Below are positions 2,319-62,235 of a stretch of DNA of 64,000 nt, one piece after another. Position numbers and translations under genes: made by a program. A model generated the notes under the pieces. The model worked only from the letters and a program-made list of their open reading frames with translations. It was not told the DNA's origin and ran no database searches. Source of the stretch: Monocercomonoides exilis PA203 (lineage: Eukaryota > Protista > Preaxostyla); NCBI GenBank assembly GCA_001643675.2, contig LSRY02000011.1, forward strand, positions 1,364,001 to 1,428,000. Direction: 5' to 3'. Numbering within the stretch: the first letter of the stretch is position 1; every line of letters begins with the position of its first letter.

Positions 2319-2751
2319 CACACGCGCACCCCTGTTTGTATTGCGATGGCTTCACGGGCCTTGTGGCGAACAGTTTGCGTTGATGTTATTTGCTGTTTGA
2401 AGACGACTGGCTTTCCCCCTTTGCCACGCAAAGTGATAACCTCTAGAATTTTTGATTTTGTGTTTGAAAGTGGATTTTAGATATATCATGCTATTCACAT
2501 CATCTGATTATTACTACCATTGTTATTATCATTGTTGTTATTATTGTTATTTTTTAAACCTCATTTTTTATTTCGTTTTATTCCATTTTATTTCTTTTGT
2601 GTACAACCTTTTCATTTCTTTTCATTTTCTTTCATTTCTTTTCTGTTCTGTTTTTTTACAACTTTCTAATTCTTTTTATTTTGTGCCCCAGCTAGAAAGG
2701 GAAAAAAAGAAAGAAAGAATTGTTTTTTATTAAAATGGAAAAAAAGAAAAA

Positions 2752-2834
2752 TGCAAGGAGTGGGATTCGAACCCACGCATCCGAAGATACTAGTACCTTA
2801 AACTAGCGCCTTAGACCGACTCGGCCATCCTTGC
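2752..2834 (-). tRNA. tRNA-Leu (anticodon AAG)
   Basis: Reverse complement GCAAGGATGGCCGAGTCGGTCTAAGGCG-CTAGT-TTAAGGT-ACTAG-...GGTTCGAATCCCACTCCTTGCA: acceptor stem, D arm, long variable arm and TTC arm are all present. Confidence 0.95.
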
Positions 2835-3399
2835 TCAGCTCAAAAAGTTTTTTCTGCTCTCAATGTCTTTAGTGTTTCTTTTTCAAAAAACAAACCATTT
2901 GAATAAATCATAAACAAAAAATTGCATTTTTAATTCGTCTAATGACACGCTGTTGTGGAAGGAAAAAATCACAATTTTTCATTTTTTTTTTTTTTTTCTT
3001 TTATCACATGAAGGATTTTATTTGTTTTTATAAAGCAATGAGTTTTTATTTTTATGATAACGTTCAAGTTTTATGTGAGTTCTATTCACCAATTGCATCA
3101 AAAATTATTATGAATAGAAAATCTTTCGTTCAAATTCGAAAATGTTACAATGTTTCCCAAAAGAGATGAAAAATGATTGCAATATGAAATTACTCTATAT
3201 TTCCAAAACCACATGTTTTAATTTTTATGAAAAGTTCATTTTGTTAAACTTTCAAAAAAACAATAATTTCATATTTCCATCAAATTTCTGTTCGCACTCA
3301 ATTTACTTCACAAAAATGGAAATAATAACAGTCAAGATTTTTTTTCATGATAATGAAATTTTGTGAGTCGGAGAAGAAATATGATCGAAATATGATAAT

Positions 3400-12300: not shown

Positions 12301-13535
12301 ACAATGACTTACTGAAAGTTCTCCGCTCTCCAGATTGTTCATGAAAATTGCTCCACCATTTGAAGTGCAATCAGTGTAATCACGCCCTGATCCAGTTGTT
12401 TTTGATCCGTTCCATTCGCACCAAATGAATGTATTTGCTCCATTATCCGTAATGTTCTGCCTCTCAGGCTTTAATGGAACCTCTGTAGTTCCAGTAATAT
12501 TCACATTTTTTGTCCGGCAACACCCAACAAACGAGGCGTTTGATACAATAATTGATGAAAGCGGTGAATTGATTGATCGGACAATTCCTCCATCATACGC
12601 ATCGCAAACTGAAGAAAACAAGCAGTTATTTATCGAAGTGGTGCTTTCCCAATGGAGCGTTGAAGGAAAGCTTCGAAGCGAGGGGAAAATAGAAACGTTG
12701 AAAAAGATCAGCCTCGAAACGGAAACACTCTCAACGAAAGGAGCGGACAAAAATGGTGAGGAGGATAATGTCATTGAAGAAAAATGAGAAGAGCAAATCG
12801 AAATCCTTCCAAATCGTGGCAAATACGTTTCAATTGGCTTTGGTGCAAAAAGAGGAGGAATTAGAGGGAATTGGGCTTTTGAAGTTTTGAGAGAGACATT
12901 CGCCAATGTTGCACAACTTCCCTTCAAGTCCAATGGCGAAGCCTCGCTTTCCACAATCATGCTGCACCCATCCATCGCAACGACACTCCCTTCCCAAGCG
13001 CAAATAAAAGCATTTTTATCACCAGAGGCCATCGCCATTCCTCTCCAAGTCACTGACGAATTCTTCAAAATTGCACATCCAACGATCTCGCTTCCTCCAA
13101 ATGTGATCCTTTTCCCGTCTGTTGTTAAAAACTCTGAGTTTGCATGGCCATCATATTTCTCCTTGAAACAATCGTCATTCTTCTCTTTTGCTCGCATTTC
13201 CTTGTTTTCCATAAAAATCTGGTTTTCCCCCTCAATTCCTTCGTTGCATGTGCTTCCATGCAGTTCATTTATCTGTACATTTTCTGTAAGTTGTTTCTTA
13301 TGGATTGCTCTATCGAGTGGCGAAACACATTCAAGTGCAGGAATTATTTCGTTTTCTTTTTCTCTTTCTTTCGGAGTTGCGTTATAAACTGTTGCATCAA
13401 TGCACATGCACCTCCGCTGCAATAACAACGCAAACGCAACAAATATCAAAATTATATTGCTTCTATTTCGCATGATATTTTGCTTTTTTAAAACTTTTCT
13501 GAATTCAATAATTATATTAAACATCATTTTGATCT
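3400..13535. repeat. Left arm of a ~10-kb inverted segmental duplication (partner ~35691-45700) covering the giant receptor gene and ~2 kb of 3' flank
   Basis: Near-identical reverse-complement sequence; ORF-track translations of 5048-5236(+) and 43986-44174(-) are identical. Homology ends at GATCAAA just upstream of the start codons. The outer boundary is approximate. Confidence 0.9.
5353..13527 (-). CDS. Giant type I membrane protein: signal peptide, Cys/Gly-rich parallel beta-helix-like (GGA/GGG repeat) ectodomain, single TM helix, degenerate kinase-like C-terminus
   Basis: 2724-aa intron-less ORF with hydrophobic N-terminus IILIFVAFALLL and repeated C...GG(A/G)I motifs. TM WPIIVIVLVMILLIVLIVSII is followed by RWRR. 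C-lobe motifs LRWKAPE, FSIGMMLWE, IPF, ERP are present, but HRD and DFG are not. Confidence 0.9.
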   Translation of the reverse strand: MMFNIIIEFRKVLKKQNIMRNRSNIILIFVAFALLLQRRCMCIDATVYNATPKEREKENEIIPALECVSPLDRAIHKKQLTENVQINELHGSTCNEGIEGENQIFMENKEMRAKEKNDDCFKEKYDGHANSEFLTTDGKRITFGGSEIVGCAILKNSSVTWRGMAMASGDKNAFICAWEGSVVAMDGCSMIVESEASPLDLKGSCATLANVSLKTSKAQFPLIPPLFAPKPIETYLPRFGRISICSSHFSSMTLSSSPFLSAPFVESVSVSRLIFFNVSIFPSLRSFPSTLHWESTTSINNCLFSSVCDAYDGGIVRSINSPLSSIIVSNASFVGCCRTKNVNITGTTEVPLKPERQNITDNGANTFIWCEWNGSKTTGSGRDYTDCTSNGGAIFMNNLESGELSVSHCSFNDCYAHYAGGGILCRSIESIEIINNTFNSCIAQSWAGGGMCIRSISSCARVSGCDFQNCKAVNYGGGLHIENFQVSGTGCIGSENGEGESACIFDCGFASCSLSDTYGAAMCIYDFLVQVKIRSIQFVSCSAVREGALYFRPEKAGKPNDGFFCYFLFFHECRCLNNLPYGHDLMFVDIFNDYLNSGIPLKECYTTNTNIQRVGYAYNYAYSNTWSYQHTEKSEWLKNGILYRLVTADGGSTNELCGINESNACKSIGVAVSQNAIQTSLFVSLMEGNHGNEQETISVGNKMNVVGKGKEASVIGTNSLSLSSTALFSVTSGRLKVLHVGIDHNATRSSSPSVFVMSGDSGELSLEDVVIFSSAAEGGSAISASVFVVALRQLKMSDVEIKNMEVAQPLFSELFMEGSASGESVLSNVTVRNVNRTGGNGVVMAKSVQEGETFVVQNISIENCLCEEGSGGGICVCLAGDGEVVVNGACAIDGCEAVNVEGKGGRGGGLFVEMESEGCGLTIGQNVEFSKVKENVASYGKDVFVSCSSGILLESKVNTNTFEFFDSTSTPSDVLRLSGSEDGKEDEVIPLFVYLCSIGSKLIVDGSEEGSLNHGYCGFEKFGCLTIDYCANNRVDSSIHEIEVVSSSSIKGEMQVTSFEVSISGKATSAKEEGMRVEVSDEGEKNRNYLIECTRPFEMNRLLFALNEEMNGRRSVFIHSSSSTITITSCSVSFTDNLLIDGMIEFNVINIDGGTLIVNGFVMEGPVTMNGKSPITMTNGMELEILNSRVSEVEVTCGNGGGCLNFEIKEGGSTKIEECNLSSVCSGGNGIKGGGIMISVGNGGSLEMKNVKFDGCEVPSIDKEEGGRGIGGGMFVRFAEEMGSTVLEGMIFEGCNAWKGKKMFISGWDLSEIVNKEKFKWEMSSEELGSLDELCGWERKTTGEERYVIPLVVYLWRNWSRNGFVSKEKGGDFSGCGYSEAPCSSIDHLVSLRYATLETEESKIIVSGSGLLRSSISFSSSSSSSSNTPVVKVEGEEKGRILRVSEMDAEGDEESMIASDIHLSFENLSFNLPSELGKHSSLIHSGSSPSSSATLSIMSCLFVCEDQLRETKYCVLKACRGCIVIEECVLSQFTLEKGFLEFTPEVEVIDVVNTTLTNTSISGRSLISLEEETQSNRLSERGIRNTKTMIRMNNSTFTNITSEENRVCVVCVDSFSVGVECVMEGCVLTKCTSMRSEEGGGVKMCLKSGESDLKVSGCSFVMCECSTGFGRGGGMMIDALDPNVEANPKTAPPLRLKMENIRFVMNEAFVGKDVFINCFSIAEQVNETLFVLDFNQDALKSNNSICGRDDVDKVDVDLIPLITFYYSAQVFLSVYGNDNRQCGAQSNPCRSVSCSVKHIEKNLMNVLWIDGECVIGGECEIGDVRMNSMMRTPATIQFNKEIEEIGNERSVAVFVNECIVEKCRFVFGEMFEGNQESILKEKNGRLEISVCIFSSLAMDLVMKNTIVSVESGELKMSETSFSGIRSTVSLLSFCSEGRVEMFEISISNIECEGDSIVVGGKAEVEMKEITANNISLMKGGSAMKIEGAEEDVSVLNCSFEKCTNSKEKGNMIQIREGRAVRIEACAFDGEGNGEWKRKRNGKMNRKEICGWNGSLITGENSNVEMRETTIKNSRNGGIWISGGSLNIEKGEFENNNPSIEGYPSLRRNVICTGNGELNVVSVKGGDGWERNTSLWMLNEGCSFEGIVSERDSSFFIPVLESVEAIEETERMKLKFKGFLLIPCNLSFSAVKRKGEEKEIEHYDFDSNGFLSEREVEGSVAKDLISSCGDEIEVSVHVLFGRSESPSSTNSIILKNKSEIEQKGDERIAEGGKKEKTFWPIIVIVLVMILLIVLIVSIIVTVRWRRAKNENKDLRELMNDSVKKDPKLIEMVTMEMSPEEQWRRAEREAEKKNEENMKKRAYDKTLGHSESSEHLLSESGSTEYILGKDSDKIPEWMLEKVDEEEETRKRTPSPSVTSTSTTDSDSTFVRGEDLCPTTSSMSNLVDAMACSSPHEKLIVDLRDSLFMLLHGRNEKKEMAIGSLQEREVTAAQVLFWVANGAIHSFDEMENPLQSLSSLSPHIVLFSEHMVICIVMHSDLLSDDDSDSSSISSSTVITSASDDGDDESDSLPSSAFEEEDSFKKECLRWKAPELQMNKKMEATKESVAFSIGMMLWECLSLKIPFGEYDAEIAGQKISNGERPSLECVSESRLHNLVLSCLSQKVESRPTLLDVKKELFGMYGKGGWVMTMTDAMDVVPVRINNGSGRMEGSEVSKEILLVEEKKE

Positions 13536-14381
13536 TTTTCTATTTTTTTTTGTGAAATGTTTCTGGTGATATCTTTTTAGAAAAAAATGATATAAATACA
13601 ATTGTTCACAATCATTGTCTTTTTCAAATTTTAAGAATTTTGAAGTTCTTTTGTTAAAAAAAAAACACTTTATTACTTAAATTGCATCTTTTCTGCTCAT
13701 GGACGTGCAAAGTGTGGGGATTGTTGAATTAAAATTTTAACAAAAATGCGTTATGAAAAGGAATAAATATATTCTGCTGAGTATCTTTCTTTTCATATTA
13801 TTATTCCATTTTATATTTGAAGAAAGAAATTCGATAACGTTGAATAGTTGTTCAAGCATAAATTTCGTTCTGAAGCTTTTTTGATGTTTCATGTTAAAAA
13901 TGTTCGAAATAATATTTAATTAAATTAAGGAAGTTTTTGATGAATGTGAATGACTCAATTTACAAAATTTTTTCTCCTTTGGAAATAAATGTGAAACCCA
14001 AGAAATTGCGGATTATTTATGATGAGTGTTCAAATTTTTCAATCAGTCAAGGATCCTCACAAAACATTTTTGAATTTTATCTTCAGGTGTTTTCAATGAC
14101 CATGAAAAGCATTTAATGCGTTGTCATCTCATTAAAAAGAAAGGCAAATGTTTTTTGAAAACAAATTTTACAAAACAAATTGATTGATAAATAATATTGT
14201 TTATTTTGAAAATTCAATCACATATTTTTAAATGCTTTCATTTGAAAGATTATTTCTAGTCAAACCCATTACAATATATATATATGCTGGAGAGTGTTAT
14301 CTGTTCAAAAAAGTCTTATTTCAAAAAAGAGTCCGCATATAATTTTCAAGGCGGATATACTGTAAAATAGGAAGAAATTAG

Positions 14382-20304: not shown

Positions 20305-20387
20305 TGCAAGGAGTGGGATTCGAACCCACGCATCCGAAGATACTAGTACCTTAAACTAGCGCCTTAGACCGACTCGGCCATCCTTGC
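20305..20387 (-). tRNA. tRNA-Leu (AAG), identical to the 2752-2834 copy
   Basis: Same 83-nt sequence, with homologous flanks on both sides. Confidence 0.95.
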
Positions 20388-32882: not shown

Positions 32883-35196
32883 TTGTACGATACACTTCAG
32901 AGAAACGACAAGGTTTCTCTTCTATCCTCGGTTTCTTCTGAGATTTCTTTAAAAGATCTCAGAAGATTTGGCTGGGACGTATCCAATGGAGAATATTACT
33001 ACTCCAGAGAAAAGCAATCTAAAAACCAGAACGAAAAAAATTCAGAAACAAACAAAATGACCCGAGCAATGAAATGTTTGATATTAATAATTAAACTTTA
33101 TTTATGTTCAATTTTTAATAGCAAACGAGCAGTTTCATAAAGCCGAAAACTGGCTCTTGAAAAATAGTTCTGCCAGTTGTTCCAATGGAAGACGATTAAA
33201 AAAGAGTTTGTATCAAACATTCCAATTTTAAAGCTTTATTCGAATGAAATGTTGATGAATTGAATAATAATTACACTTTTCTATCAAGGAAAAAGTGAAA
33301 TGCGCACAAATTCCATCTTTTCTTCGGCTGGTCCTTTGCCTCCGGAAAACGAAGGAGATGATGTAATGCAACGATCTAATGTCGAAGCATGCTCGTCCAT
33401 CGATGGATGTACATCATCGGAGTATGGATCTTCAATTGAAACATCAAACGTTTCAACAAAACACCCAGATGATAAGGGAAAAAAGCAAGAATTGAAAAAA
33501 ACAAAAGATGAAGAAAAAGAAGATAAAAAAAATAAAGAAGATAAAAATGAAAATAATACACACAAAATAAATAATTCAAGAAAACAAACAAATCAAATTT
33601 CGAGAGTAAATTTGATTGACAAGGCTTCCAATGTGCTTATCGAAGAAAATTGTTCAGAATCTGAAATGGAGGAATGCGAAAGAGAAAAAATGTTTAATGG
33701 AAACAAGACAAATTCAAATAACAAAGAAATAGAAATATCTGAAGAAGAAAATGAAAAAGAAGACAAAGAAAAAGTTGAAATAAAAATAAAAAGAAATAAT
33801 AACGGTTGTATCAATAACAGTATTTTTTCTTGTAATGAAAAAAGAATTATTGAGAAAACCAAGAAAGAATTATTTAATGAAATGAAGAAAGAAGTGGAAG
33901 TCAAAATGTCCTATTCGACATTTTGCAAGAAAACAAAAAATTTTATAAAATCAAAGAAAAGAACAGATTTGTGTGAAATCTGTGAAAGAGGAAAATATTT
34001 AGAAAAGAAAAAATTTGAAACAGAAAGAAACGGAAAAGAAATTGGCCAAAAAGAAAATGATGAATTGAATTTAATAATTCAGCATAAAAAAATGGCCCAA
34101 CATCAAAGAAATTATTTTTATGAAAAGAAAGAAAAGCTGAAAAAAGATGAAGTGATTATTATCATGGATTTTAAAGAAAATTGGAGCTTGCCAATTTCAA
34201 ATAATGAAACTGGAAAATCTTTCTTTAATAAAAAACAAATCTCTCATTTATGTTTTGTTGTTTATTATGTTGATTGTTTTGGAGCTTTACAAAAATGTTG
34301 TTTTAATTTTTTTTCAGAAATTTTATCTCATGATTATCGTTTTGTTTTGGAGTGTTTGAATAAGTTATTACGTTTCGATATTTTTTCCAATGTTTATTCT
34401 TTTCATTTTTTCTGTGATAATGGTCCTCATTTTCGGAATTCACAAATTTTTCATTCACTATTTTCTCCTAATTCTTTATTGTTTTTAAATAAACACTGCT
34501 CACTTTCATTCTTTGCCGAACATCATGGTAAGAATGATTGTGACAGTGAATTTGGTTATTTAACACAGTTAATAAACAATAATCTTGGCGATCGTATATT
34601 GAATAATGTGTACGATCTCATAGATTTTTTTTGTTCACAGTGTAATTCTTATCTTTTTGGCACTCATGATTCAAATTCTCCAATTTTTGTTTCTTCTTTT
34701 ATATCTGATATATCTAATAATTCATTAGGGCGAATGAATGAAGTTTCGGAGCCAAGCGATCAGAAAGAAAAACTGAACAGAACAAAGCATTTCTTTTTAA
34801 TGTTTGATCATTTTTTTTATTATATTTTTCAATAATTTTTATTTAACATTTTTAAAATTTGTATTCTTCTTTTTTTTCAAAAGGCATGAAGAATTACCGA
34901 ATAATCGTTGGAACAAATTAGTTATAACTGGTATGAAACAATATTTATTTTTCGAATCAAATGGTTATAATGTGCTGGCATCACCGCTGAGTTGCAATGA
35001 AAAAGAACGTATGAAAGAATTAAAATTCAAAATTGAAATGAATTTGGATGAGAAGAAAAGGAAAGTTTTCAAAAGAGAAACTGAAACAAACAATGAAATA
35101 GTTGAAAATGAAAGTTTAAATTTAAAGAAAAGGGTTAGAAACGTACTTGAAAAAAGAATAGAATTAATGAATAATTTTTCTTCATTTAATTTTTAA
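32883..35196 (+). pseudogene. Sola-like DDD transposase; core intact (33300-34801 spliced to 34884-35196), 5' exons apparently frameshifted
   Basis: Motifs KKRTDLCEIC, H...[40 protein letters not shown] intron 34802-34883 restores the frame. The upstream piece ISLKDLRRFGWDVSNGEY is homologous to exon 2 of the 54841-58760 gene, but the NEQ/ENW segment changes frame. Confidence 0.75.
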
Positions 35197-35309
35197 GAAA
35201 TACACAGAAACTGACAGGTATGCTTTTTTTTCAAAACTCTTTTGTTATTTTTATTAAATTTTCGATTTTTAAATTTTTTCTTTTTTTTTTCAATCGTTGA
35301 ATCTTGAAT

Positions 35310-35476
35310 TGTGAAAAAATTGTTTATTCTTGCTTATCCGATGAAATTTGGTTCTATCCAAATTGAGGACAAGACTGAATCCATCCTGTTGTTGCTTTAA
35401 TTGAACAATTATTGCAATAACTTGCAGGCTTTGGGTCCAGATTCAGTTTCCCAGGAGAATAAACAATTTTTTCACA
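35310..35476 (+). ncRNA. Candidate structured RNA (three-way junction with K-turn) downstream of Sola-like transposase 1
   Basis: 22-bp closing helix (35310-35331/35455-35476); UGCUUAU; hairpin CC-GAU-GA-AAUUUGG/CCAAAUU-GA-GG; ACAAGA; CUGAAUC/GAUUCAG enclosing a long hairpin; UUUCCCAG. Same architecture as 54699-54836. Confidence 0.7.
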
Positions 35477-35490
35477 TTTTTACAAGGTAT

Positions 35491-35491
<1 letters not shown>

Positions 35492-35537
<46 letters not shown>
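35492..35537 (+). repeat. Poly-T tract (~46 nt)
   Basis: Directly visible. Confidence 0.9.
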
Positions 35538-35539
<2 letters not shown>

Positions 35540-35690
35540 AAAAATTTTGGAAATTATTTGAATTCTTAAATTTGAGAAAGGATTCAAACCGGAATTATTC
35601 AGAAAAATTGTTGAATGTGGAAAAATATTCATAAATGTTGGGTGGAACAAAATTCATAAAGCTAAAAATTTTGCCCCATTTCACTATAAT

Positions 35691-38600
35691 GATCAAAGTG
35701 ATGTATAATATAATTATTGAATTCAGAAAAGTTTTAAAAAAGCAAAATATCATGCGAAATAGAAGCAATATAATTTTGATATTTGTTGCGTTTGCGTTGT
35801 TATTGCAGCGGAGGTGCATGTGCATTGATGCAACATTTTATAACGCAACTCCGAAAGAAAGAGAAAAAGAAAACGAAATTATTCCTGCACTTGAATGTGT
35901 TTCGCCACTCGATAGAGCAATCCATAAGAAACAACTTACAGAAAATGTACAGATAAATGAACTGCATGGAAGCACATGCAACGAAGGAATTGAGGGGGAA
36001 AACCAGATTTTTATGGAAAACAAGGAAATGCGAGCAAAAGAGAAGAATGACGATTGTTTCAAGGAGAAATATGATGGCCATGCAAACTCAGAATTTTTAG
36101 TAGCAGACGGAAAAAGGATCACAATTGGAGGAAGCGAGATCGTTGGATGTGCAATTTTGAAGAATTCGTCAGTGACTTGGAGAGGAATGGCGATGGCCTC
36201 TGGTGATAAAAATGCTTTTATTTGCGCTTGGGAAGGGAGTGTCGTTGCGATGGATGGGTGCAGCATGATTGTGGAAAGCGAGGCTTCGCCATTGGACTTG
36301 AAGGGAAGTTGTGCAACATTGGCGAATGTCTCTCTCAAAACTTCAAAAGCCCAATTCCCTCTAATTCCTCCTCTTTTTGCACCAAAGCCAATTGAAACGT
36401 ATTTGCCACGATTTGGAAGGATTTCGATTTGCTCTTCTCATTTTTCTTCAATGACATTATCCTCCTCACCATTTTTGTCCGCTCCTTTCGTTGAGAGCGT
36501 TTCTGTTTCGAGGCTGATCTTTTCCAACATTTCTATTTCCCCTTCGCTTCGAAGCTTTCCTTCAACGCCATATTGGGAAAGCACCACTTCGATAAATAAC
36601 TGCTTGTTTTCTTCAGTTTGCGATGCGTATGATGGAGGAATTGTCCGATCAATCAATTCACCTCTTTCATCAATTATTGTATCTAACGCCTCGTTTGTTG
36701 GGTGTTGCCGGACAAAAAATGTTAATATTACTGGAACTACAGAGGTTCCATTAAAGCCTGGAAGACAGAACATAACGGATAATGGAACAAATACATTCAC
36801 TTGGTGTGAATGGAACGGATCAAAAACAACTGGATCAGGGCGTGATTACACTGATTGCACTTCAAATGGTGGAGCAATTTTCATGAACAATCTGGAGAGT
36901 GGAGAACTTTCAGTAAGTCATTGTTCATTCAATGATTGTTATGCTAATTTTTCAGGAGGCGGAATCATGTGCCATTCAATCAAATCAATTGAGATTGAGA
37001 ACAATACATTCAACTCATGCACTACAAAAAATAATGCTGGAGGAGGAATTTATGTTTATGTAATTTCATCATGCGTTAGAATTAGTGGATGTGAGTTCCA
37101 TGAATGCAAGTCATACAGCCATGGAGGAGGACTTTTTCTCGATTCTTTTAATGTTTTTGATCAAGGATGCATTAGGGAAGAAAATGGAGGAGGGGAAAGT
37201 GCGTGTGTGTTTGACTGTAGTTTCACTTCATGCTCAATAACAGATAGATATGGTGGAGGTATGCTTTGTAGACGTGTTTCTGCTAAGGAATTCAAAATCA
37301 GGAGCGTTCAGTTTATCTTTTGTTCTGCAGGCTCTCACGGTGGAGGATTCTGCTTAGCTCCTTGGAGAGATGTAGTGCCTCATGATAAACTGTATTGTTT
37401 CTTCCTTTTCTTTCACGACTGTAGATGCTCGAAAATTCCATCGTTTGGAGATGACATATACTTTGAAGATTATTACAGCCTCTTTTTAAAATCGGGAAAT
37501 CCGTTTAAAGAATGCTATACAACTAATACAGCCAATAGAAGAATATGCTTCGCATTTAATAATTCAAATGATATTTGGTCATATCAGCATACAGAAAAGA
37601 GTGAATGGCTGAAAAATGGGATTCTTTATAGGCTTGTGACAGCAGATGGAGGCAGTACAAACGAGTTGTGCGGAATAAATGAATCAAACGCATGCAAAAG
37701 CATTGGCGTTGCAGTTTCTCAGAACGCGACACAGACAAGCTTGTTTGTTTCACTGATGGAAGGGAACCATGGAAATGAACAAGAAACGATCAGCGTGGGA
37801 AATAAAATGAATGTTGAAGGAAAAGGAAAAGAAACAAGCGTGATTGGGACGAATTCGCTTTCTTTGTCTTCAACAGCATTGTTCAGCGTGACAAGCGGGC
37901 GACTGAAGGTGTTGCATGTGGGGATTGATCACAATGCGACAAGAAGTTCATCGCCGAGTGTGTTTGTGATGTCTGGAGATAGCGGAGAACTTTCTTTGGA
38001 AGATGTGGTGATTTTTTCATCAACGGCAGAAGGAGGGAGTGCAATATCAGCATCAGTATTTGTGGTGGCTCTAAGGCAACTGAAAATGAGTGATGTTGAG
38101 ATAAAAAATATGGTTGTGACCCAACCTCTATTTTCTGAGCTGTTCATGGAAGGATCAGCATCAGGAGAAAGTGTTCTTTCAAGTGTAACAGTTCGGAATG
38201 TGAATCGGACAGGAGGAAATGGAGTGGTGATGACTAAGAGTGTGCAGGAAGGAGAGACATTTGTGGTGCAGAATATATCAATTGAAAATTGTTTGTGCGA
38301 GGAAGGGAGCGGGGGAGGAATTTGTATTTGTTTAGCAGGTGACGGGGAAGTTGTGGTGAATGGAGCATGTGCGATTGATGGATGTGAGGCAGTAAATGTT
38401 GAAGGAAAAGGAGGAAGAGGAGGAGGATTATTTGTTGAGATGGAAAGTGAGGGATGCGGATTGAGAATTGGATCAGAAGTGCAGTTTTCTGAAAACAAAT
38501 CAAATGAAGCAGAATTTGGGAAGGATGTGTTTATTTCATGCAGTTCAGGGATATTGCTAGAGTCAAAAGTGAATGCAACTTCATTTGAATTTTTTGACTC

Positions 38601-49765: not shown

Positions 49766-52388
49766 TTGGTGGCAGTCAAAGGAGGGTTTGTAATGAAAGT
49801 GATCGAAGTTGCATTTGAACACGTTTCAGTTGCAGCTTCTTTCTCCACATCCGTAGAAGAGGTTGCAAAAGAGCGAGATATTTGGACATAGCAACATTCA
49901 GTTGCATCACAATCAACTGGCCGTGATGACGATTAGAAGGAAGATGATATAAAAGAAGATGCAAATTCTTGGTGCTCAGTTCTTTCAGCAGCCGCTCCTT
50001 CAAATTGTTCAGATTGATATGAATTAGTCCATTCATTCAGCGCTTTTTTGAACGATTTTGGTGCTTGCATGCTTGTGGCATCCTTCTCAGTATCTTCTTC
50101 TTCACTCTCTCTTTCACTCTTTCTTCATCTAAGTCTCCTTTTCTAACTTTTTCAAGTTCTTTGTTACTTCCGTTTTTTAATTTCTTTTTTTCCCCACTTT
50201 CATCTGCCTTGATTGCAATTCACCACTATCTCTCTCATCTCCTCGATCTCCTTTATCTTCTAAATCATCCTTTTCCCTCTTCATTTACTTCTCTTTCTGT
50301 TTCTTTCGAACTGTTCACTCAACAAAATGAATCAGAATTCCCGTGATTGTTAATAAATAAGGTTCATCTTTCCCTTTTGCCTCTGGTTCAACAGAACTCC
50401 CAATCTGATAACCAGCACTTCTTCTGTGCGGATGAATACAAACAGAATAAGTACAAAGCAAACCTAGTGGAAACGCAGAAAAATAAAGAAAAGAAAAGAA
50501 GAATGGGAAAGCTGCTGCTTATTCCGTGCCTGTGAATGCTTCCAGAGTTGCAGCGGCGAACAGCAGAAGATAAAAAAATGAATTTCTGGAGGCTGAGCAA
50601 AGCCGCCTTTCCTGCTGAGCACTATCTGAAAGTTGCTGAATTCTTCTGATTGAGTCGCCGAATTAAGTTTATTGTTATCGCTCAAGTTGCCAAGCTGACT
50701 CATCCCATTCGTTTCTCCATCGCATTTAACTTTTGAAATAAAATTATCAAAAGAAGAAGCTATTCCTTTTTCATCCTTCATCTTCTCCTTTTTCTCATCT
50801 TCTTCTTTGCTTTCATCTGATAACATTTCTTTAGAATCATCTTCCATCAATTGTTGATGTATTCTCCTTATCGAAGAAACAGCTCTTCCAAAAATGTTTA
50901 TGCTGTGATAGAATCGTTTGGAATGACTGCTGAATGAAGAGAGAAGATGCGCCCAGTCATTTTTGGTGACATATGTGTGCGGAGAACAAGTTGTGGAGAT
51001 TATTTGGCTGGATGAAGAAGAAGAAGAAGGAGGAGGAGGAGGAAGAAGAAGAGGAGGAGGAGGAAAAGAAGGAAGAGGAAGAAGAAGGAAAAGACAAAAT
51101 TTTTGTCAGGATCGTCGAAACTTGCGAGTGATGATGATGCTGACGTACATCTTTGTTGTCAACATTATGAATAAAAGGCGCTCTCTGCTCTTTCTTCGTT
51201 CTCATCCCTGGTGCTCCCTTTGGAGTTCGATAAGTCAGTCCTTTTTCTGTTTTTCCTTCATTTTCCTCCTCTCTATCTCCTTCTTCTCCGTCTCTTCCTC
51301 TTCCTCTCCATACGGGCCATATCCAATCTGCGAAGCACATTCCACAAAGTTGCCTATTGTAAATTCACTTGGCTGCGTTATCAGTAAATGTTGCACTTGA
51401 TTCGTTCTGAAGATGCAGGTTGAGCCAAAATCCATTCGAACATCTCGTTCTGCTGGCGCCGCACATGTTAAGGACAATCTGAATCATCTGAAAAGTCGTT
51501 TGCTTCGTCGTTTTCTTCGTATTTTTCATCTTCGCTCGCTTCGTAGAAGGAGTCTGAAAAAGCAAATCGATGGTGAGAATAAATTTGTGGAGAAGAAGAG
51601 GAAGATAATGATGGTGTATTCCGATGATTTCTTGTATCTATGTCCTGCGCTCGTGACGAATTCTGTTTGTGTTCCTTTTGCTTTGCCTTCTTTTCGGTAT
51701 TTTGTTCTCATTCATCATTAAGCCTATTTTCCACAGTGTCTTTGATCACCTACTCTCTGAAGAAGTTCGATTCGCTCCAGTCTAATTCTTCTTTTTGCAG
51801 CTTGCTTAATTCGTCCTTTTCATCTTTCAATCTCTTCTGTTTTGCATTTTCTTCGTATCTTCGCTTTTTGTGTTCTGAATCACTCATTACTCCTTCTTCC
51901 TCTTTATATTTATCTCATCTTCCTCTATCTTCCTCCTCTTCCTCTCCATTTCCATCTCCCTCTTTTCTTCTCTTTCTCTTTCTCGCTCTTCTCATCTGTT
52001 TCCCTGCCATTTCTCTTCACTGCTGCTTGTTCTGAAAGATGCCGTGCTTTCCCACTGCCACGATGCCTTCAAGGATGCCAACAACCACTCCGCTCATGAA
52101 ACATTCGGAGGAAAAACGAGAAGTCGAATCGAAGCTCATCTCAGGCTCCGTCTTCATCACGCTCATCGCTTCTGACCGAGAGTCGGTGGTGGATTTGGAA
52201 GAAGAAGATGATGATGAGGATAAGGATGAGGAAGATAACGAAGAAGGAGAAGGCACGTGATGTGGTTTTGCCTCGTTTTTTGAAAAAGGAGAAGTGCATT
52301 TTTGATGTTATTGAAGATCGAGAATTTTGAAGATGAATGCATATTATTATCAACTAAGAAAATCAACAAAATTCTCTTCTTCAGGATT

Positions 52389-53736
52389 TTGTCTTCTTCA
52401 GCCGAAAAGAAACCTCAGAATCCTTTTCACTTTCAGCTCAATCATCCCCCCTCTCCAACAAAAAAGTGAAATATTGAGCGATCTCTTTTTCATTCCATTT
52501 CTTTCGATTTTTCACTTCCCCTTTTTTCACAAAAAATCATCTTTCCTCAAAAATAATTCTTTGCCAAAGCCCAATGCTGGGAATCTTCGAAATATCTTGA
52601 ATTTCATCTGTCTGTCTTTATTTTTTCCCCCAAACTTTTCTTTTTATTCTTCAAAATCATCTTATCCTTCGCTCTTTCAGCATTCTTAAAACAAAATAAT
52701 AATCACTTCAAAAAAACAACAACAACAAACCTTCCAAACTTTTTTATTGGCAATATCTATATTTTATTCAGTTGGTATCTGTTTTCCTCCAATTAAATTT
52801 TTTTATTCCTTCCTTTTTCAAGTGTTTCATCATCTGATTTGCCAACCATCCTTTCCAGAAGTCATTTTAGCTTCAAATGCATTGATTTCCCTTCCTTCTG
52901 AAAAATGTGAAATTTATGCATTCTGCTCAATTCCACCCTCATCATTGAAAAATATCCTGTTTTTCCGTCTGAAAATATAACTCCAATTCCCTTCCCAATC
53001 CCTTCACCCTGTGCACTTTTCGTATGAATTCGCTCTCCCAACTCGATGGTCAGCCTGCACAATGAGATATCCCGCTTTCATTCATTTTCATTCTTTTTGA
53101 CCTGCTGCCCCTAAAACAACACAAAAAACATCAACAGGCTAATATTCATATATGGAAAAATAAATAAATATCGAACTTCCTTCTCTGCCTTTTTATTAGC
53201 AATTATTCTTTTCCTCATCAATCATACAAATATTTTCACTTAAAACAAAGAAAGAACACGTGTTGATTTCCTAGAAGAAAGATTTGTTTTAAAGCATGTG
53301 TTTTCCTCATAAGTTAACAAAAAAACAAACCTCGATACAACGTCAATGTGGAGAAAAATTGTTGAAAGAATATTTTGAAATAAAGTTATGGAATTTTTTT
53401 CTAATTGAAAAGAGTGCAAAACACACATTTTTTTAATCATTTTTAATGAATATTGTTGTTTTAATAATTATGAAATGTATGAACGCAAATAGAAAATACA
53501 CATTTTCTCGTTCTTAAAAGAACAAAAAAGAAAAAAATTTTCACAGATTTTTGATCTGAAAATTTGAGATACATTTTTCGAAAAAGAGGTCACACCTTGG
53601 CACCCCTTTTTTTGATATATTTCACACACCTTCATAACAGCAAATCGATTCGTGCAAAAAAAATGCCACCCAAGGTGTGACCCTCGTGGGATACCTTAAA
53701 AATATTTTTTCCAATTGATCTTATCCAAAATTTTTT
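52389..53736. repeat. Left arm of a ~1.35-kb inverted repeat (partner 59534-60881)
   Basis: Identical ORF translations on opposite strands; all paired coordinates sum to 113270, so there are no indels. Confidence 0.95.
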
Positions 53737-54698: not shown

Positions 54699-54836
54699 CT
54701 AACTGTTGTGCACCTGGGAGGCTGTTCGTCGTATCCAGGTCCGGATAAAGCAGCCCGAAGGCTGCAATATCTAATACGAACAGTCATGTCCAGCACCCTT
54801 CCGATAGAGTGCTAGCTAAGCATGCACAACAACTAG
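54699..54836 (-). ncRNA. Candidate structured RNA (three-way junction, cUUCGg tetraloop) starting 4 nt after the transposase stop codon
   Basis: Minus strand: 15-bp closing helix CUAGUUGUUGUGCAU/GUGCACAACAGUUAG; GCUUAG; 10-bp hairpin CUAGCACUCU/AGGGUGCUGG; ACAUGA; CUGUUCGU/ACGAACAG enclosing GCAGCC-UUCG-GGCUGC and UAUCCG/UGGAUA; CCUCCCAG. G-U pairs set the strand. Confidence 0.75.
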
Positions 54837-54840
54837 TTTC

Positions 54841-57761
54841 TTAATAGGGGTCACCATTAATACAATTTTGAGATTCATTTAAAGATGAAGAGTCAAGAAG
54901 AAGATCAAATCTTCTTGAAAGAAGATCTTGAGAAGATTGAGAAAGAAGAGAAGAGTTAGATGATGTGATATCAGAGTGAAATGACTTCCTTGTTCGTTGC
55001 ACTTTTTCTATCATTGTCGAAGATTCGAGGGCAACCAGAGAGCGTTGAGGAAGATATCCAACAGCAGATGCGCAGACAAATGAGCCCTTGCGCTCAAAAT
55101 ACAAGTAGTCCTTCATGTGAGGGATTGACAGCGATGGCCATGAAATTTGCTGAGATTGTACGTACTCTTCAAAGTACCTCTCATGAACAGAGTCATTGAC
55201 AGATGATGTTGATAGAGAAGAATTAGTTGAGGATGATTCAAAAATGTCTTGTTGTGATGTCGAAGAAGCAGATGTCGATGTGTTCATGTTGTTTTCGAAG
55301 AAGTTGATTAAGTCGTAAAGTGTGGTGATGTGTTCAGTTGATAGGTTGTTGTTGATTGTGTTCACAAGTGCACCAAATTCACTATCGCAAATATTTTTTC
55401 CATGATGCTCAGCGAAGAAGTTGAGTTGAGAATTTTTCTTTTTTAGGAGTTTCGATTGTTTGGAGAGGATGAAGTGAAGAAGGAAGCGATTTCGGTTGTG
55501 TGGACCAGAATCGCAGAAGAACTTATAAGTGTGAGTGTCTGAGAAGAAGTGTCTTTTGATCACAGATTCCAGACACTCAATAACAAATCTGTGATCATTT
55601 GAGAGGCAGTCAGAGAAGAAGTTGAAAGTTCTTTTAATTTGTTGATTGTTTATTTTTTGAAGTGAGATGATTGTGAATTGAGAAACTTGTTGATAGTTGA
55701 AGAATTCTTGTTGAAGTTGGTTTTTTCTAATAGGCAGCTTCCATTTCTCTTTGAAGTCAAAAACGAAGACTGCCTCACCGTCTTTGAGATTGTTAACAGT
55801 TGATTGATAATGTTTCCGTTGCATTTCTGCTACAAGTCGATGCTGACGAAGAAGTTTGAGTGTATGAAACTCGGCGGAAGAAAGTCCATTTTTGTTTTGA
55901 GAAGATTTAAGTTTGTTTTCGAGATAGTTCAACTTCTCACACATGCCGCAGAGATCTGTGCGCCTTTTTGCTTTGGAGAAGTTGGTTGTGAGCTTGTAAA
56001 AGTGAGATAATGAAACTTTGATGTTTGTTTCATCTGTAAACTCTTTCCATAATTTCGTCTTGGGCTTAAAGATTAATCTCTTTTCATTGGGAGAAAAGAT
56101 GCCCGTTTTCTTTCTTCTTTCTTTAAGTTCTTCCAATCCATAGTTAGTTGTTATTGATGATGATAGTTGTGGAATGGAAGTTGTTCGAGGAGGTGGTGTG
56201 ATGAGTAATGATGATGATGATGATGATGATGATGATGGCGTTGCTGTTGTTGTTGTCGAAGTTAGTGCTGCTGTTGTTGTTGATATGTTATTTAAATTGT
56301 TCAAATTTGATGTTTCTGAAGAAGAAGAACCACCAAATTGAATTGATGAAAAAGTTGGTTTGGCTTTTTCTTTGATATAGAATGAAAGTGACGGAGTGAA
56401 ACCTTGAGCATAAAGATCCTTCCATGCCTTTGTCCAATTTTCGATGTTCAGTTCTGTCACATCAACGTCGTTACAGATATTCCATATGCAGTTGTTAACG
56501 CTCTTTCTTTTAATCACAGCGATGTAATGTCCATTCTGTTGATCTAAACGCTTGAAAAGAATTTGCCCAACGAGATGATATATGAAGATTTCCTTATTGT
56601 TCTTTTGCGTATGTTGAACGTTTTCTGTTGAAAACACTTTGATAAACGATCGCTGGTGAACACGATCAGTTTCAATCAGAAGAGTTCGTGAAGGAGCAGA
56701 GCTAGCAGAGTCAGTGCATTCGTGACAGAGGGCCAGCACCTCTGGAAATGCAGCCATTTCCTCCCATCTCTCAGCACAGCATTTCTCTTTGCACTCGTTG
56801 CAACAAACGGTGTTCTTTCCAATTAAAACTTCAGTTGCAAAAAGAGATGATAGGCCGTTGTGAGGAGAAGAAGAATTGATTACGACACTGTTGCAAACTT
56901 CGTTGAAACGTGATGTAATTTTTTGGCAATTTTGGCATTTAAAATGAGTAATTAAAACAGGGTTGAATGTGTCCTTGTTTATCAACTCATCTGTTTGAAG
57001 AAGTTGGCAAAGATTGTCGAATGCATGAGCCACATTTTGCTGTTGCCTTTTTCCAAAGTTGCAGAATTCTTCCCATTTATTAATAAGCGATGGGACCCAC
57101 GAACGCACTGCCATTCCATCTTTAGCCAATTGTTGACAAACACTAATAACACGCGAAGATGTGTTCTTCATAGCTGTTTGTTTTTTGAGAAAAGATGGCT
57201 TTTGTGATATGATTGAAGATAAGCATTGAAGAAGAGAGGCCAGATAGCAAGTATTTCCTAAATTTTGCAAGCCTTTAACTGTTTTTGATGAAGAACTGGA
57301 ATCTTTGTTAATGTTAGAAAATATCGATGAAGAAGGAGATTGAATTGAAGGAAGAACATCCATTTTGTTGCTGTTTGAGATGATTTGTGGAGAATAATCA
57401 TGAAGTGTTTCATCTCTATCATCTGCTTGTGTGTTATGAAGAGAAGAAGTGATACTGCCTTTTGAAAATGATGACAGAAGATTTTGAAAAGCCTGAGGAG
57501 GAATAAGAGTGGGTGAAGTGGCATATTCAACTAATTGATCACTCACCCACACATCATTGTTGCTGAAGGAAGAAGTGTTTGTTGTTTCTTTTTGTTGCTT
57601 TTTGGAAGATGAGGAGGATGAGGAGGATGAGGAGGATGAGGAGGATGAGGAGGATGAGGAGGATGAGGAGGATGAGGAGGATGAGGAGGATGAGGAGGAT
57701 GAGAAGGATGAAGATGAGGAAGATGAAAAAAAAGGTGAAGAAGAATATGAAGAAGAAGAAG

Positions 57762-57792
<31 letters not shown>

Positions 57793-58760
57793 TGATGATT
57801 TTTTTGTTTTGAAGAATTTGTGAATTGGAATGGGCGAAGGAGACGAGTGACGTTTTTGATGTGATTTATTTGTTTTTCTTTTTGTTGATCTCCTTTCTCT
57901 CATAATTGGAGTGTTGATTGGAGCATCAATAGATTGAGAAGGTGAAGAATTTGAAGAAGGAGATTTTTTTTCTGAAACGACATTTGATTTTTTATTTTGT
58001 TGAGATGATGATGAAGAAGAAGAAGATTGTTTTTTCTTTGAAGAGGAATTTTCTGTAATTATATCTTCTTCCCAAGCTGCTTCATCAATAAATCTTGCAT
58101 AATCCGGTTCTGCTCGCTGCTTTTTCTTTGCTGACTGAAGCGAAGTTGAGGCTTCAGTGGAATGGGCTAACATCCAGTTGTTGCCCTTTTCCCAATCCTG
58201 TTCATTTAAGCCTAAAATAAACAGAGAAAATTATTCAAAAAAAATTCAAATAAAAACAAACCACTTTTGCAAGACGGTAGATGCGGTTTTTGAGGCTGGA
58301 CAATAAATCCTTGGTTCTTCTTTAAAGTTTGTTTTGCATAAATGTATTTGCCTTCTGTGACATCATATCCATAGTCTTGTAAATCGGATAATGATGTGTT
58401 TCGAGACAGCGCCTGTAGCATTGTTGTCTGAGTGTGCAATGGAGCGTTGTTGTACACAACAGACATGTCTTCGAGCAGCTTTATATGATATTCTGTTTGA
58501 AAAAAAATAAATAATAAACAAAAAAATAAGAAAATGACAAATATGACAGTTCATGAATTTTTCTATATAAAACTTGAAAAAATAAAAATCAAACCGTTTA
58601 ATGTCTTCAGTAAATCGTTTATTACTGAAGATGATTGCCTATAGTTGAAAAACAGATAGACAAGCAATGCATCCACGTCATCTCCACCGATGCGTTCAAT
58701 TTCTTTCCAAAGAATTTTCGATTGTGAATTAAGAGTTGATTGAGGTTTCGAAAAAGACAT
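54841..58760 (-). CDS. Sola-like DDD transposase with an internal ubiquitin-specific protease (peptidase C19) domain; join(58760-58595, 58492-58262, 58211-54841), ~1255 aa
   Basis: Two phase-1 GT-AG introns give one uninterrupted frame. USP motifs: Cys box [18 protein letters not shown], His box [18 protein letters not shown]. Transposase motifs: [44 protein letters not shown]. Confidence 0.9.
57606..57795 (+). repeat. (GAGGAGGAT)n/(GAA)n tract encoding the poly-Ser linker of the transposase
   Basis: Directly visible. Confidence 0.9.
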
Positions 58761-59533: not shown

Positions 59534-60881
59534 AAAAAATTTTGGATAAGATCAATTGGAAAAAATATTTTTAAGGTATCCCACGAGGGTCACACCTTGG
59601 GTGGCATTTTTTTTGCACGAATCGATTTGCTGTTATGAAGGTGTGTGAAATATATCAAAAAAAGGGGTGCCAAGGTGTGACCTCTTTTTCGAAAAATGTA
59701 TCTCAAATTTTCAGATCAAAAATCTGTGAAAATTTTTTTCTTTTTTGTTCTTTTAAGAACGAGAAAATGTGTATTTTCTATTTGCGTTCATACATTTCAT
59801 AATTATTAAAACAACAATATTCATTAAAAATGATTAAAAAAATGTGTGTTTTGCACTCTTTTCAATTAGAAAAAAATTCCATAACTTTATTTCAAAATAT
59901 TCTTTCAACAATTTTTCTCCACATTGACGTTGTATCGAGGTTTGTTTTTTTGTTAACTTATGAGGAAAACACATGCTTTAAAACAAATCTTTCTTCTAGG
60001 AAATCAACACGTGTTCTTTCTTTGTTTTAAGTGAAAATATTTGTATGATTGATGAGGAAAAGAATAATTGCTAATAAAAAGGCAGAGAAGGAAGTTCGAT
60101 ATTTATTTATTTTTCCATATATGAATATTAGCCTGTTGATGTTTTTTGTGTTGTTTTAGGGGCAGCAGGTCAAAAAGAATGAAAATGAATGAAAGCGGGA
60201 TATCTCATTGTGCAGGCTGACCATCGAGTTGGGAGAGCGAATTCATACGAAAAGTGCACAGGGTGAAGGGATTGGGAAGGGAATTGGAGTTATATTTTCA
60301 GACGGAAAAACAGGATATTTTTCAATGATGAGGGTGGAATTGAGCAGAATGCATAAATTTCACATTTTTCAGAAGGAAGGGAAATCAATGCATTTGAAGC
60401 TAAAATGACTTCTGGAAAGGATGGTTGGCAAATCAGATGATGAAACACTTGAAAAAGGAAGGAATAAAAAAATTTAATTGGAGGAAAACAGATACCAACT
60501 GAATAAAATATAGATATTGCCAATAAAAAAGTTTGGAAGGTTTGTTGTTGTTGTTTTTTTGAAGTGATTATTATTTTGTTTTAAGAATGCTGAAAGAGCG
60601 AAGGATAAGATGATTTTGAAGAATAAAAAGAAAAGTTTGGGGGAAAAAATAAAGACAGACAGATGAAATTCAAGATATTTCGAAGATTCCCAGCATTGGG
60701 CTTTGGCAAAGAATTATTTTTGAGGAAAGATGATTTTTTGTGAAAAAAGGGGAAGTGAAAAATCGAAAGAAATGGAATGAAAAAGAGATCGCTCAATATT
60801 TCACTTTTTTGTTGGAGAGGGGGGATGATTGAGCTGAAAGTGAAAAGGATTCTGAGGTTTCTTTTCGGCTGAAGAAGACAA
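59534..60881. repeat. Right arm of the ~1.35-kb inverted repeat
   Basis: See 52389-53736. Confidence 0.95.
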
Positions 60882-62235
60882 TAACCTGAAGACGAGAATT
60901 TCAATGAATATCTCCGTTGATGTAAATTGACACTCATCTTCTTTAAATCCAACAATTAATCATTTCATGACATTCATTCATCATCTTCTTCTTCTTCATA
61001 ATCAAATATTTCAACATCATATCATACAGTATCTTCTTCTGTTTTCTCTTTCTCTTCCTCATCATTTTCATCCTCCTTATCCTTCTCTTTCATTTCATGC
61101 ACCTTTCATTCACCTCCTCCTCTCAACCAACAGATCTTCCCTTGTTCCTTCTTCATTGGCTCTTCAATTCTCTTCTCTTTCTCCATCTTTCCCTTCTCTC
61201 TCTTCTCTCTCTCACATCCCTTCTCTCCCTCATTCTTTTCTCACTCAACAGCTTCTTTCTCAGTCAACTTCACCTGATCTTTCTCCTTTTCCTCCGCCTT
61301 TCTTTGATGAAGACAACGAATTTACAAACATTCGCACAAGAAAACTTCAATTGAGGCAGAACAGACTGAGATGGGTGCAGAAAAACAAGCAGATGTCGAA
61401 CAAAGAGCAGAGGAAGCTGGCTATTTTCACTGGAATATTTGAGAATGGGAATAATTGGAAAGATAGAAAAGGAAAAAGAGGAAATGGAGTGAGATGAATA
61501 ACACGAAAAACAGCAATGAGGGAGAGAGAGAAGGAGAAGTGGAAGGAGAAACTGAAAGAGAGAGAGAAAGAGAAAGAGAAAAGAGAGAAATTTCATGATT
61601 TAAAACTATTAGGCGATTGGGTGGAGCTTCTTGATACAGACGAGGCAGTCGATGAACGTGGAGTCAATCCATTGACACTCGAAAACTCCTCATCTTCCAA
61701 CACAATCAACACATTTGATTTTCCTGGCTATGTAACCAATCTTATTGACAACTTTCTCTTTGAGCAATTACTGAACAATGGCGATGGCATTCTGCGAAGA
61801 AGATTCGGTTCGCTTGCAAACAGCCTCATTTCGAGCAGAGAATTGTCTGTTTTTCAGTCAGATGCGATCTGAATCCATCTTTTGTGCCTCGAAGACAAAG
61901 ACTGAGAAAAAGCAATCAAAATTCAACATAAACCTTTTTTACTCATTCAATTGCTGGCATTGGCACAGGAACAGGAACATCTCCTTCTTCATTACCCAAT
62001 GAATCTTTTATTTCTCTTTGTCAGCCATCTCCTTCTCCCTCTCCTTCATCATCATCATCATCATCTTCTTCTTCTTCTTCCTCTTCTTCTGTCTACCAAT
62101 CAGAGCCAATTTCATTCAGAATCCATTCTTCTGCTTATTCCTCCATTCCACCTGCCATTTCAGCCACTTCTTCATTCAATTCCCCCACCTCTTCCATCAC
62201 AATGACACAAACTTCAACCTCTTCTTCATTCTTCT

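Follow-up and report, generated by a model that had tools for sequence, protein, structure and literature searches.

The window analysed here, a stretch of 64,000 nucleotides of the Monocercomonoides exilis genome, contains two copies of a structured RNA, each encoded on the sense strand behind the gene of a DDD transposase (Table 1). The structured RNA family of these transposons is previously undescribed and is a candidate for its own Rfam family. We tentatively infer its function to be that of a cis-acting module in the 3' untranslated region (UTR) of transposase mRNA, in one DDD-transposon clade of oxymonads. That the RNA is functional is supported by at least 150 genomic copies, by homologues in a metagenome, by covariation in the helices, by a peak of conservation at the RNA and by the lack of relevant matches in Rfam, in agreement with the preliminary description, which had proposed a functional structured RNA linked to transposases on the grounds of conserved junction bases and covarying helices.

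Table 1. Features of the two transposons and their RNAs, in window positions
Feature	Positions	Strand	Basis or remark
RNA copy A (type A)	35307..35479	+	sequence, fold z -5.8, inverted repeat I10, model R1 match
RNA copy B (type B, commonest type)	54699..54836	-	sequence, fold z -5.3, model R1 match
Transposase gene, element A	33300..35196	+	511-aa ORF 33300-34835 with DDD core
Transposase gene, element B	54841..58173	-	single 1110-aa ORF, stop TAA 54843-54841
Right terminal inverted repeat, element B	52329..53736		1408 bp, 98.8% identical to 60941-59534 (BLAST in window)
Left terminal inverted repeat, element B	59534..60941		1408 bp, 98.8%
AAUAAA poly(A) signal in P1 3' strand, copy A	35458..35463	+	T-run 35492-35537 behind
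Candidate pseudoknot 5' strand, copy A	35430..35435	+	UUUGGG, would pair with CCCAGG 35450-35455
Candidate pseudoknot 5' strand, copy B	54735..54739	-	CCUGG, would pair with CCAGG 54717-54713

Fold and covariation of the RNA

Minimum-energy folding gave for each of the two copies a three-way junction, with the long helix P1 as its closing stem, and energies of -58.2 kcal/mol for copy A and -57.4 kcal/mol for copy B, and in neither case was any of 200 shuffled sequences as stable. The architecture put forward in the preliminary description was thus reproduced, and the motifs that it had listed for the two copies were all present in the sequence. From 5' to 3', the order common to both copies is P1, UGCUUA(U/G), a hairpin P2 ending in GG, ACA(A/U)GA, P3, (UU/CC)UCCCAGG and the 3' strand of P1 (P1'), and P3 starts with CUG and ends with CAG. 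In copy A, nucleotides 35307-35330 of P1 are paired with 35456-35479, the strands being 24 nt long, 96% complementary and detectable as an inverted repeat in the window; they enclose UGCUUAU, the P2 hairpin with its final GG, ACAAGA, the helix P3 (CUGAAUC/GAUUCAG, around an inner hairpin, P3a) and UUUCCCAGG, which leads into P1'. In copy B, a P1 of 14-15 bp is followed by UGCUUAG at 54822-54816, a 10-bp P2 hairpin, ACAUGA and then P3 (CUGUUCGU/ACGAACAG), which encloses an inner hairpin capped by a cUUCGg loop and the invariant stretch CGGACCUGGAUACG, and the junction is closed by CCUCCCAGG.

The helix sequences of A and B are almost wholly different, and the DNA common to the two elements, besides the RNA motifs, amounts to one 48-nt match. 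Across the RNA family, P1 ranges from 14 to 24 bp and the length of the RNA from about 135 to 170 nt. The junction strands UGCUUA, ACAWGA and UCCCAGG are near-constant across the types, with GCUAG replacing ACAWGA in types found in a metagenome. A covariance model, R1, in which five types (A, A', A2, B and C) were represented by 14 sequences, matched copy A at 35317-35469 with 106.3 bits (E 1.4e-26) and copy B with 147.5 bits.

For the analysis of covariation, 56 matches, 43 of them distinct, were aligned to R1. Standard pairs occupied 97.1% of the cells, and changes on both sides were seen in 21 of 24 pairs (13 of 14 in P1 and all 8 in P3). The covariation score was 0.339, compared with 0.116 in shuffles, and was reached by 0 of 500 shuffles, a count that is not a probability because the sequences are related. 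When the partner was slid by 1-3 columns, pairing fell to 30-50%, and it is on these slid controls, together with the complete turnover of helix sequences between types, that the case for covariation rests. The earlier claim that the helices differ and still pair is therefore well founded, covariation in P1 and P3 being far above the controls. G-U pairs were frequent; for example, one pair of P1 is C-G in 14 copies, U-G in 15 and U-A in 12. The antisense strands folded 5-7 kcal/mol worse than the sense strands, with z-scores of -5.2 and -5.5. Since G-U pairs are common, the fold was assigned to the sense strand of the transposase.

A further, tertiary contact is suggested by complementarity to the last junction strand, J3/1. 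The best complement of CCCAGG was located 19-20 nt upstream of J3/1 in seven of seven types, within an internal loop of the P3 arm, where it reads UUUGGG, CUUGGG, CCUGG, CUUG.G or UCUGGG. Judged from these sequences, a pseudoknot between YYUGG of the internal loop and CCAGG of the junction strand is likely, if unproven: 93% of its cells are paired, the changes are one-sided (C or U opposite G) with a constant 3' strand, and 69-74% still pair in the slid controls. A second pseudoknot, GGAC/GUCC, was tried by eye and rejected, as it fits types A, A2 and E, would need another register in D and is absent from B and C.

The P2 hairpin differs in form among the types. A K-turn is composed of a canonical stem and a 3-nt bulge followed by tandem sheared G-A pairs, and P2 of types A, A' and A2 (window 35332-35368, L040, L038), which can be written CC-GAU(UGU)-GA...U-GA-GG, fits this consensus by eye and could, from its sequence, bind a protein of the L7Ae/Snu13 type. 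In types B, C and D, P2 is a plain hairpin without this consensus, so that a K-turn is not a defining feature of the RNA family. In addition, some type B copies (L029; C20, C24, C39) have the tip of the inner hairpin flipped from CCUUCGGG to CCCGAAGG, a DNA-level inversion of a small palindrome by which the stem is kept.

Transposons that carry the RNA and its conservation

The transposase of element A is divided between two frames, the C-terminal part being encoded in another frame at 34804-35196, with an intron or a frameshift between the parts; this C-terminal part is homologous to the C-terminus of the B transposase (E 2e-6). The ORF of element B, to which annotated proteins of M. exilis show 90-93% identity, contains a ubiquitin-hydrolase UCH/USP domain (Pfam PF00443, E 2.9e-13) at residues 301-578 (window 56380-57275), followed in frame by the CxxC motif and the DDD transposase core at residues ~690-1010. 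Fusion to a UCH domain was also observed in the type C element (L039), and element A is without this domain. The catalytic cores of A and B share 41% identity over ~280 residues, and are thus closer than the preliminary description had supposed in granting them only motif-level protein similarity. With the transposase core as query, HMMER found 671 homologues among 1.84 billion representative proteins. In 19 aligned homologues, D117, D199, D241, C53 and C56 are invariant, and the DDD triad expected of transposases of the Sola superfamily is thus present in them; placement in this superfamily would further call for homology to reference Sola1/2/3 transposases and for termini and a target-site duplication of the Sola kind. 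Pfam gave a weak match to DUF7869 (E 2.7e-4) in one of the 19 members, DUF7869 being the Atlas lead as well, and no relatives of the transposase were found in the PDB.

Element B is an 8.6-kb transposon with long terminal inverted repeats (TIRs), whose arms differ from each other in their outermost 50 nt. Its RNA is separated by ~960 nt from where the right TIR begins on its inner side, and by ~2.4 kb from the outer end of the element. For element A, similarity to other copies stops ~200 nt beyond the RNA. In five other copies of element A, the shared part is confined to 33762-35680 (1.9 kb) and always starts at ORF residue ~154, and one copy (C22) shares a further stretch of at least 3.2 kb upstream; going by these alignments, element A exists in a short and a long form. 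The start of a 2744-aa receptor-kinase-like gene is repeated in inverted orientation with 99% identity at 35689-36500 and 12725-13537, which places element A between two inverted copies of this giant gene. Two tRNA genes of 58 bits each, at 2752-2834 and 20305-20387 on the minus strand, lie 17.5 kb apart and probably belong to a duplicated segment.

In the M. exilis assembly (82.3 Mb, 101 contigs), a pattern of two motifs occurred 107 times, against 0 times in a reversed control, and R1 matched at least 150 genomic copies, all of the 150 scored candidates giving E values from 7e-36 to 2e-8. About 115 of these 150 scored matches are of type B, and about 35 are more diverged, with 49-106 bits. 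R1 also matched two contigs of one JGI metagenome (3300010163), in both of which the RNA is on the sense strand of the transposase. In one of them (L072), the gene is at 276-2039 and the RNA, with 36.6 bits and a fold z-score of -5.9, at 2087-2250; in the other (L084), the gene is at 2367-4412 and the RNA, with 35.3 bits, at 4432-4597, so that the RNA begins 48 nt and 20 nt past the transposase stop, respectively. The transposases of these contigs, 30-44% identical to those of the window, are among the closest relatives from outside M. exilis; P1 and P3 of their RNAs have new sequences that still pair, and UGCUUA and UCCCAGG are unchanged. No RNA was found with R1 near 14 more distant relatives of the transposase (the oxymonad Blattamonas nauphoetae, ENA and Logan contigs, and eight metagenome loci), where divergence or short contigs, rather than true absence, may be responsible. 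The RNA is either confined to a sub-clade or has diverged elsewhere beyond the reach of the model. The covariance-model search of this genome and of others, which the preliminary description had advised, thus yielded at least 150 genomic copies and two metagenome homologues.

The position of the RNA relative to the transposase gene was found to vary. The statement that the RNA lies just 3' of the stop was accurate for copy B, at 4 nt past the TAA, and not for copy A, at ~113 nt past the stop at 35196; in type C, the transposase is 200 nt upstream of the RNA. A recoding signal was excluded as an explanation by this variation from 4 to ~200 nt. Transposase coding sequence continues upstream of the RNA in all the B copies examined, and several diverged RNA matches have a transposase match on the same strand 0.7-1.1 kb upstream, or in one case 3.8 kb upstream. 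The two copies lacking a transposase (L038 and L040) are short fragments of transposase-bearing families, situated between other repeats. Every RNA copy that could be checked is within a DDD-transposase element or a fragment of one. An independent mobile unit of the MITE or SINE kind was rejected, P1 differing between types and the checked copies being embedded in transposase elements or their fragments. Some intact-looking transposase loci were without an RNA among the 150 scored matches, and at such loci the RNA may not be obligatory or may have diverged beyond detection. Three type C copies (G000 C13:991969-997769, C11:1559053-1564853 and C12:510891-516692), with 84-85% identity, lose their similarity to L039 at about the transposase stop, before the RNA, and may have a diverged RNA or none. 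Short high-copy repeats of ~590, 265, 500 and 630 bp abut fragments that bear the RNA (L040 5300-5890, L039 6272-6535 and the flanks of L038), and are probably MITE-like elements nested with the DDD transposons.

A conservation profile was obtained from 42 distinct B copies aligned across 2.9 kb. Mean pairwise identity was 0.98 and 0.95 in the RNA and 0.98 in the catalytic core, as against 0.91-0.94 in the C-terminal coding region and 0.81-0.85 directly downstream of the RNA. The few positions of the RNA that varied among the 42 copies fell in loops or in pairs with compensating changes, and no variation was seen in the junction strands or in CGGACCUGGAUACG. The profile shows the RNA to be under purifying selection.

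Relation to known RNAs

Rfam 15 (4227 families) was searched with the whole window at gathering score and with both RNA loci at E values up to 10. At gathering score, the window gave the two tRNAs and nothing else, and at the two loci the permissive search gave unrelated matches at chance level, with 9-19 bits compared with thresholds of 35-103. The earlier impression that the RNA is not of a known family thus agrees with the Rfam scan, which returned no relevant match at either RNA locus. The literature searched described no structured RNA for these or for other eukaryotic cut-and-paste transposons.

Several known RNA elements resemble the transposon RNA in position or in architecture. The constitutive transport element of Mason-Pfizer monkey virus (MPMV), the RNA transport element of intracisternal A-particles (IAP) and the ENE clamps are folded modules that act in cis in the 3' part of mobile-element mRNAs, where they attract host factors or shield the 3' end. 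By analogy, theirs would be the role that we think most likely for the transposon RNA; in sequence and fold, however, they are unrelated to it, and none of them is known from a cut-and-paste DNA transposon. An ENE consists of a stem, interrupted by an internal loop that is U-rich on either strand, and of an A-rich tract downstream, and no conserved U-rich internal loop of this kind was found in any type of the RNA. The PTE-type 3' cap-independent translation enhancers of plant viruses form a three-way junction in the 3' UTR, in which a C-rich junction strand has been proposed to pair with a G-containing bulge. UCCCAGG of the transposon RNA would similarly pair with YYUGG(G), a likeness to be taken as a lead only; unlike in the enhancers, the G-containing partner is in the P3 arm and not in the basal stem, and there is no sequence relation and no Rfam match.

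Possible roles of the RNA

As a 3'-UTR element, the RNA would be a compact protein-binding module near the end of the transposase mRNA, promoting nuclear export, stability, translation or 3'-end formation. Such an element is in keeping with the position of the RNA, which without exception lies on the sense strand and downstream of the ORF, but not at a fixed distance from it. A conserved host factor acting in export, stability or translation would most likely be the partner, and a host factor of this kind, or catalysis, is the easiest reading because the junction bases are constant while the transposases are at 37-41% identity. In M. exilis, the poly(A) signal, AAUAAA or AAAUAA, has U-rich sequence around it and precedes the cleavage site by 20-30 nt (Treitli et al. 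2021, PMC8767320). The 3' strand of P1 in types A and A2 (L038) contains a canonical poly(A) signal, which is followed by a T-run of 20-46 nt, and this location of the signal in P1 favours the 3'-UTR reading. In these two types, cleavage directly past P1 would make the fold the terminal 170 nt of the mRNA, immediately before the poly(A) tail. In type B, on the other hand, no canonical poly(A) hexamer was present in the 600 nt downstream of the RNA, which counts against the 3'-UTR reading. Also counting against it, the combination of constant junctions with covarying helices is no less characteristic of ribozymes, or of RNAs bound by a conserved domain of the protein of the element. Among sequencing runs, a single RNA run contained part of the stretch, amounting to 5% of the sampled words. 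Before the T-run, the A-type copies have in common the conserved sequence AGGUAUG, which is similar to a 5' splice site as well.

The RNA could instead act in trans: released from the transcript or made separately, it would associate with the DDD transposase and serve it as a scaffold, regulator or guide, much as transposon-encoded RNAs do in OMEGA/Fanzor or IS110 systems. The omega RNA of OMEGA systems is encoded beside a TnpB or Fanzor (RuvC) gene, overlaps the 3' end of the ORF and reaches the transposon end, with the guide lying beyond it, and the bridge RNA of IS110-type elements has internal loops complementary to the donor ends and to the target. The transposon RNA is like both in being an element-encoded structured non-coding RNA that adjoins the gene of a mobility protein in sense orientation, and in combining a conserved core with family-specific parts, here the helices P1, P2 and P3a. 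Its linkage to the transposase gene, directly behind it on the same strand, in at least seven types and two organisms, and its conservation, as strong as that of the catalytic core, also speak for a cofactor. However, the protein, a DDD transposase of the RNase-H-like kind that has a CxxC motif, is neither a RuvC nuclease nor a DEDD recombinase, and the RNA is internal, about 0.2-2.4 kb from the element ends (~2.4 kb from the outer end in B), unlike the end-located omega RNA. The variable parts are self-paired helices, with no evident free guide-like segment and no complementarity to the element ends; comparison of the B RNA with the outer 150 nt of the B TIRs revealed no 8-mer identity or complementarity, which leaves a guide unsupported, although the test is a weak one as the termini and targets of B are not delimited. 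The constancy of the junction bases behind transposases that are only 37-41% identical also argues against this reading, and we consider a trans-acting cofactor unlikely.

Somewhat less probable than such a cofactor is a role in forming or regulating the 3' end of the transposase transcript, either as a self-cleaving ribozyme of a new class or as a folded target of a host RNase. Near-invariant junction strands, covarying helices and a likely tertiary contact, here the candidate pseudoknot, liken the RNA to small three-way-junction ribozymes and aptamers such as the hammerhead and the purine-riboswitch type, and the lack of a canonical poly(A) hexamer in the 600 nt past the RNA of type B also counts in favour of this reading. 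The hammerhead ribozyme is a three-way junction with the core strands CUGANGA and GAAA and a UH cleavage site. In both copies, this CUGANGA/GAAA core was absent, and Rfam gave no hammerhead match either. The conserved cores of the hammerhead and purine-riboswitch families are thus missing from the transposon RNA, no Rfam model matches it, there was no ribozyme match even at E values up to 10, and its junction strands are unlike those of the hammerhead or of any other small ribozyme known to us. In addition, with the poly(A) signal of types A and A2 inside P1, cutting within the fold would remove the tail of the message.

That the sequence is a DNA-level signal for transposition or replication of the element, such as a cruciform, a folded single strand of DNA or a palindrome bound by protein, is very improbable. 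P1 is a long, near-perfect inverted repeat, the antisense strand also folds well and the inverted hairpin tip of some copies reflects a DNA-level event, all of which would be compatible with such a signal. However, conserved G-U pairs are A-C mismatches on the other strand, compensation has passed through G-U intermediates, the asymmetric invariant junctions and the candidate pseudoknot are features of a single-stranded tertiary fold, and the sequence is always in sense orientation, downstream of the ORF and within the element. That the RNA has no function, its motifs being left over from common descent and its hairpins incidental palindromes of AT-rich transposon DNA, is scarcely credible: all copies belong to one transposase clade and their relatedness inflates the shuffle statistics, but A and B have identical junction strands and only one 48-nt match outside the RNA, the helices have changed nearly throughout and still pair, in contrast to the 30-50% of the slid controls, family B has a conservation peak at the RNA, and a second organism has kept the RNA behind transposases that are 37-44% identical.

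According to the prevailing view, eukaryotic cut-and-paste transposons require nothing beyond a transposase and their terminal repeats. A fold kept as tightly as the catalytic core, across transposases of ~40% identity and in two organisms, suggests an undescribed requirement at the RNA level in the life cycle of the element. It is possible, although we regard it as rather doubtful, that the RNA takes an active part beside a eukaryotic DDD transposase, which would need it as a scaffold, regulator or targeting cofactor, or that it processes the transposon transcript as a self-cleaving ribozyme of a new class; if so, no dedicated functional RNA would have preceded it among eukaryotic cut-and-paste DNA transposons, those of the TnpB/Fanzor lineage apart, and a ribozyme or transposase cofactor would constitute a new class of RNA. 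In either case, the RNA is a candidate for a new family with a covariation set of at least 150 copies. If the RNA is an expression module, it would show how a DNA transposon secures the export, stability or translation of its mRNA in a deep-branching eukaryote without mitochondria, and would represent a compact, portable 3'-UTR element.
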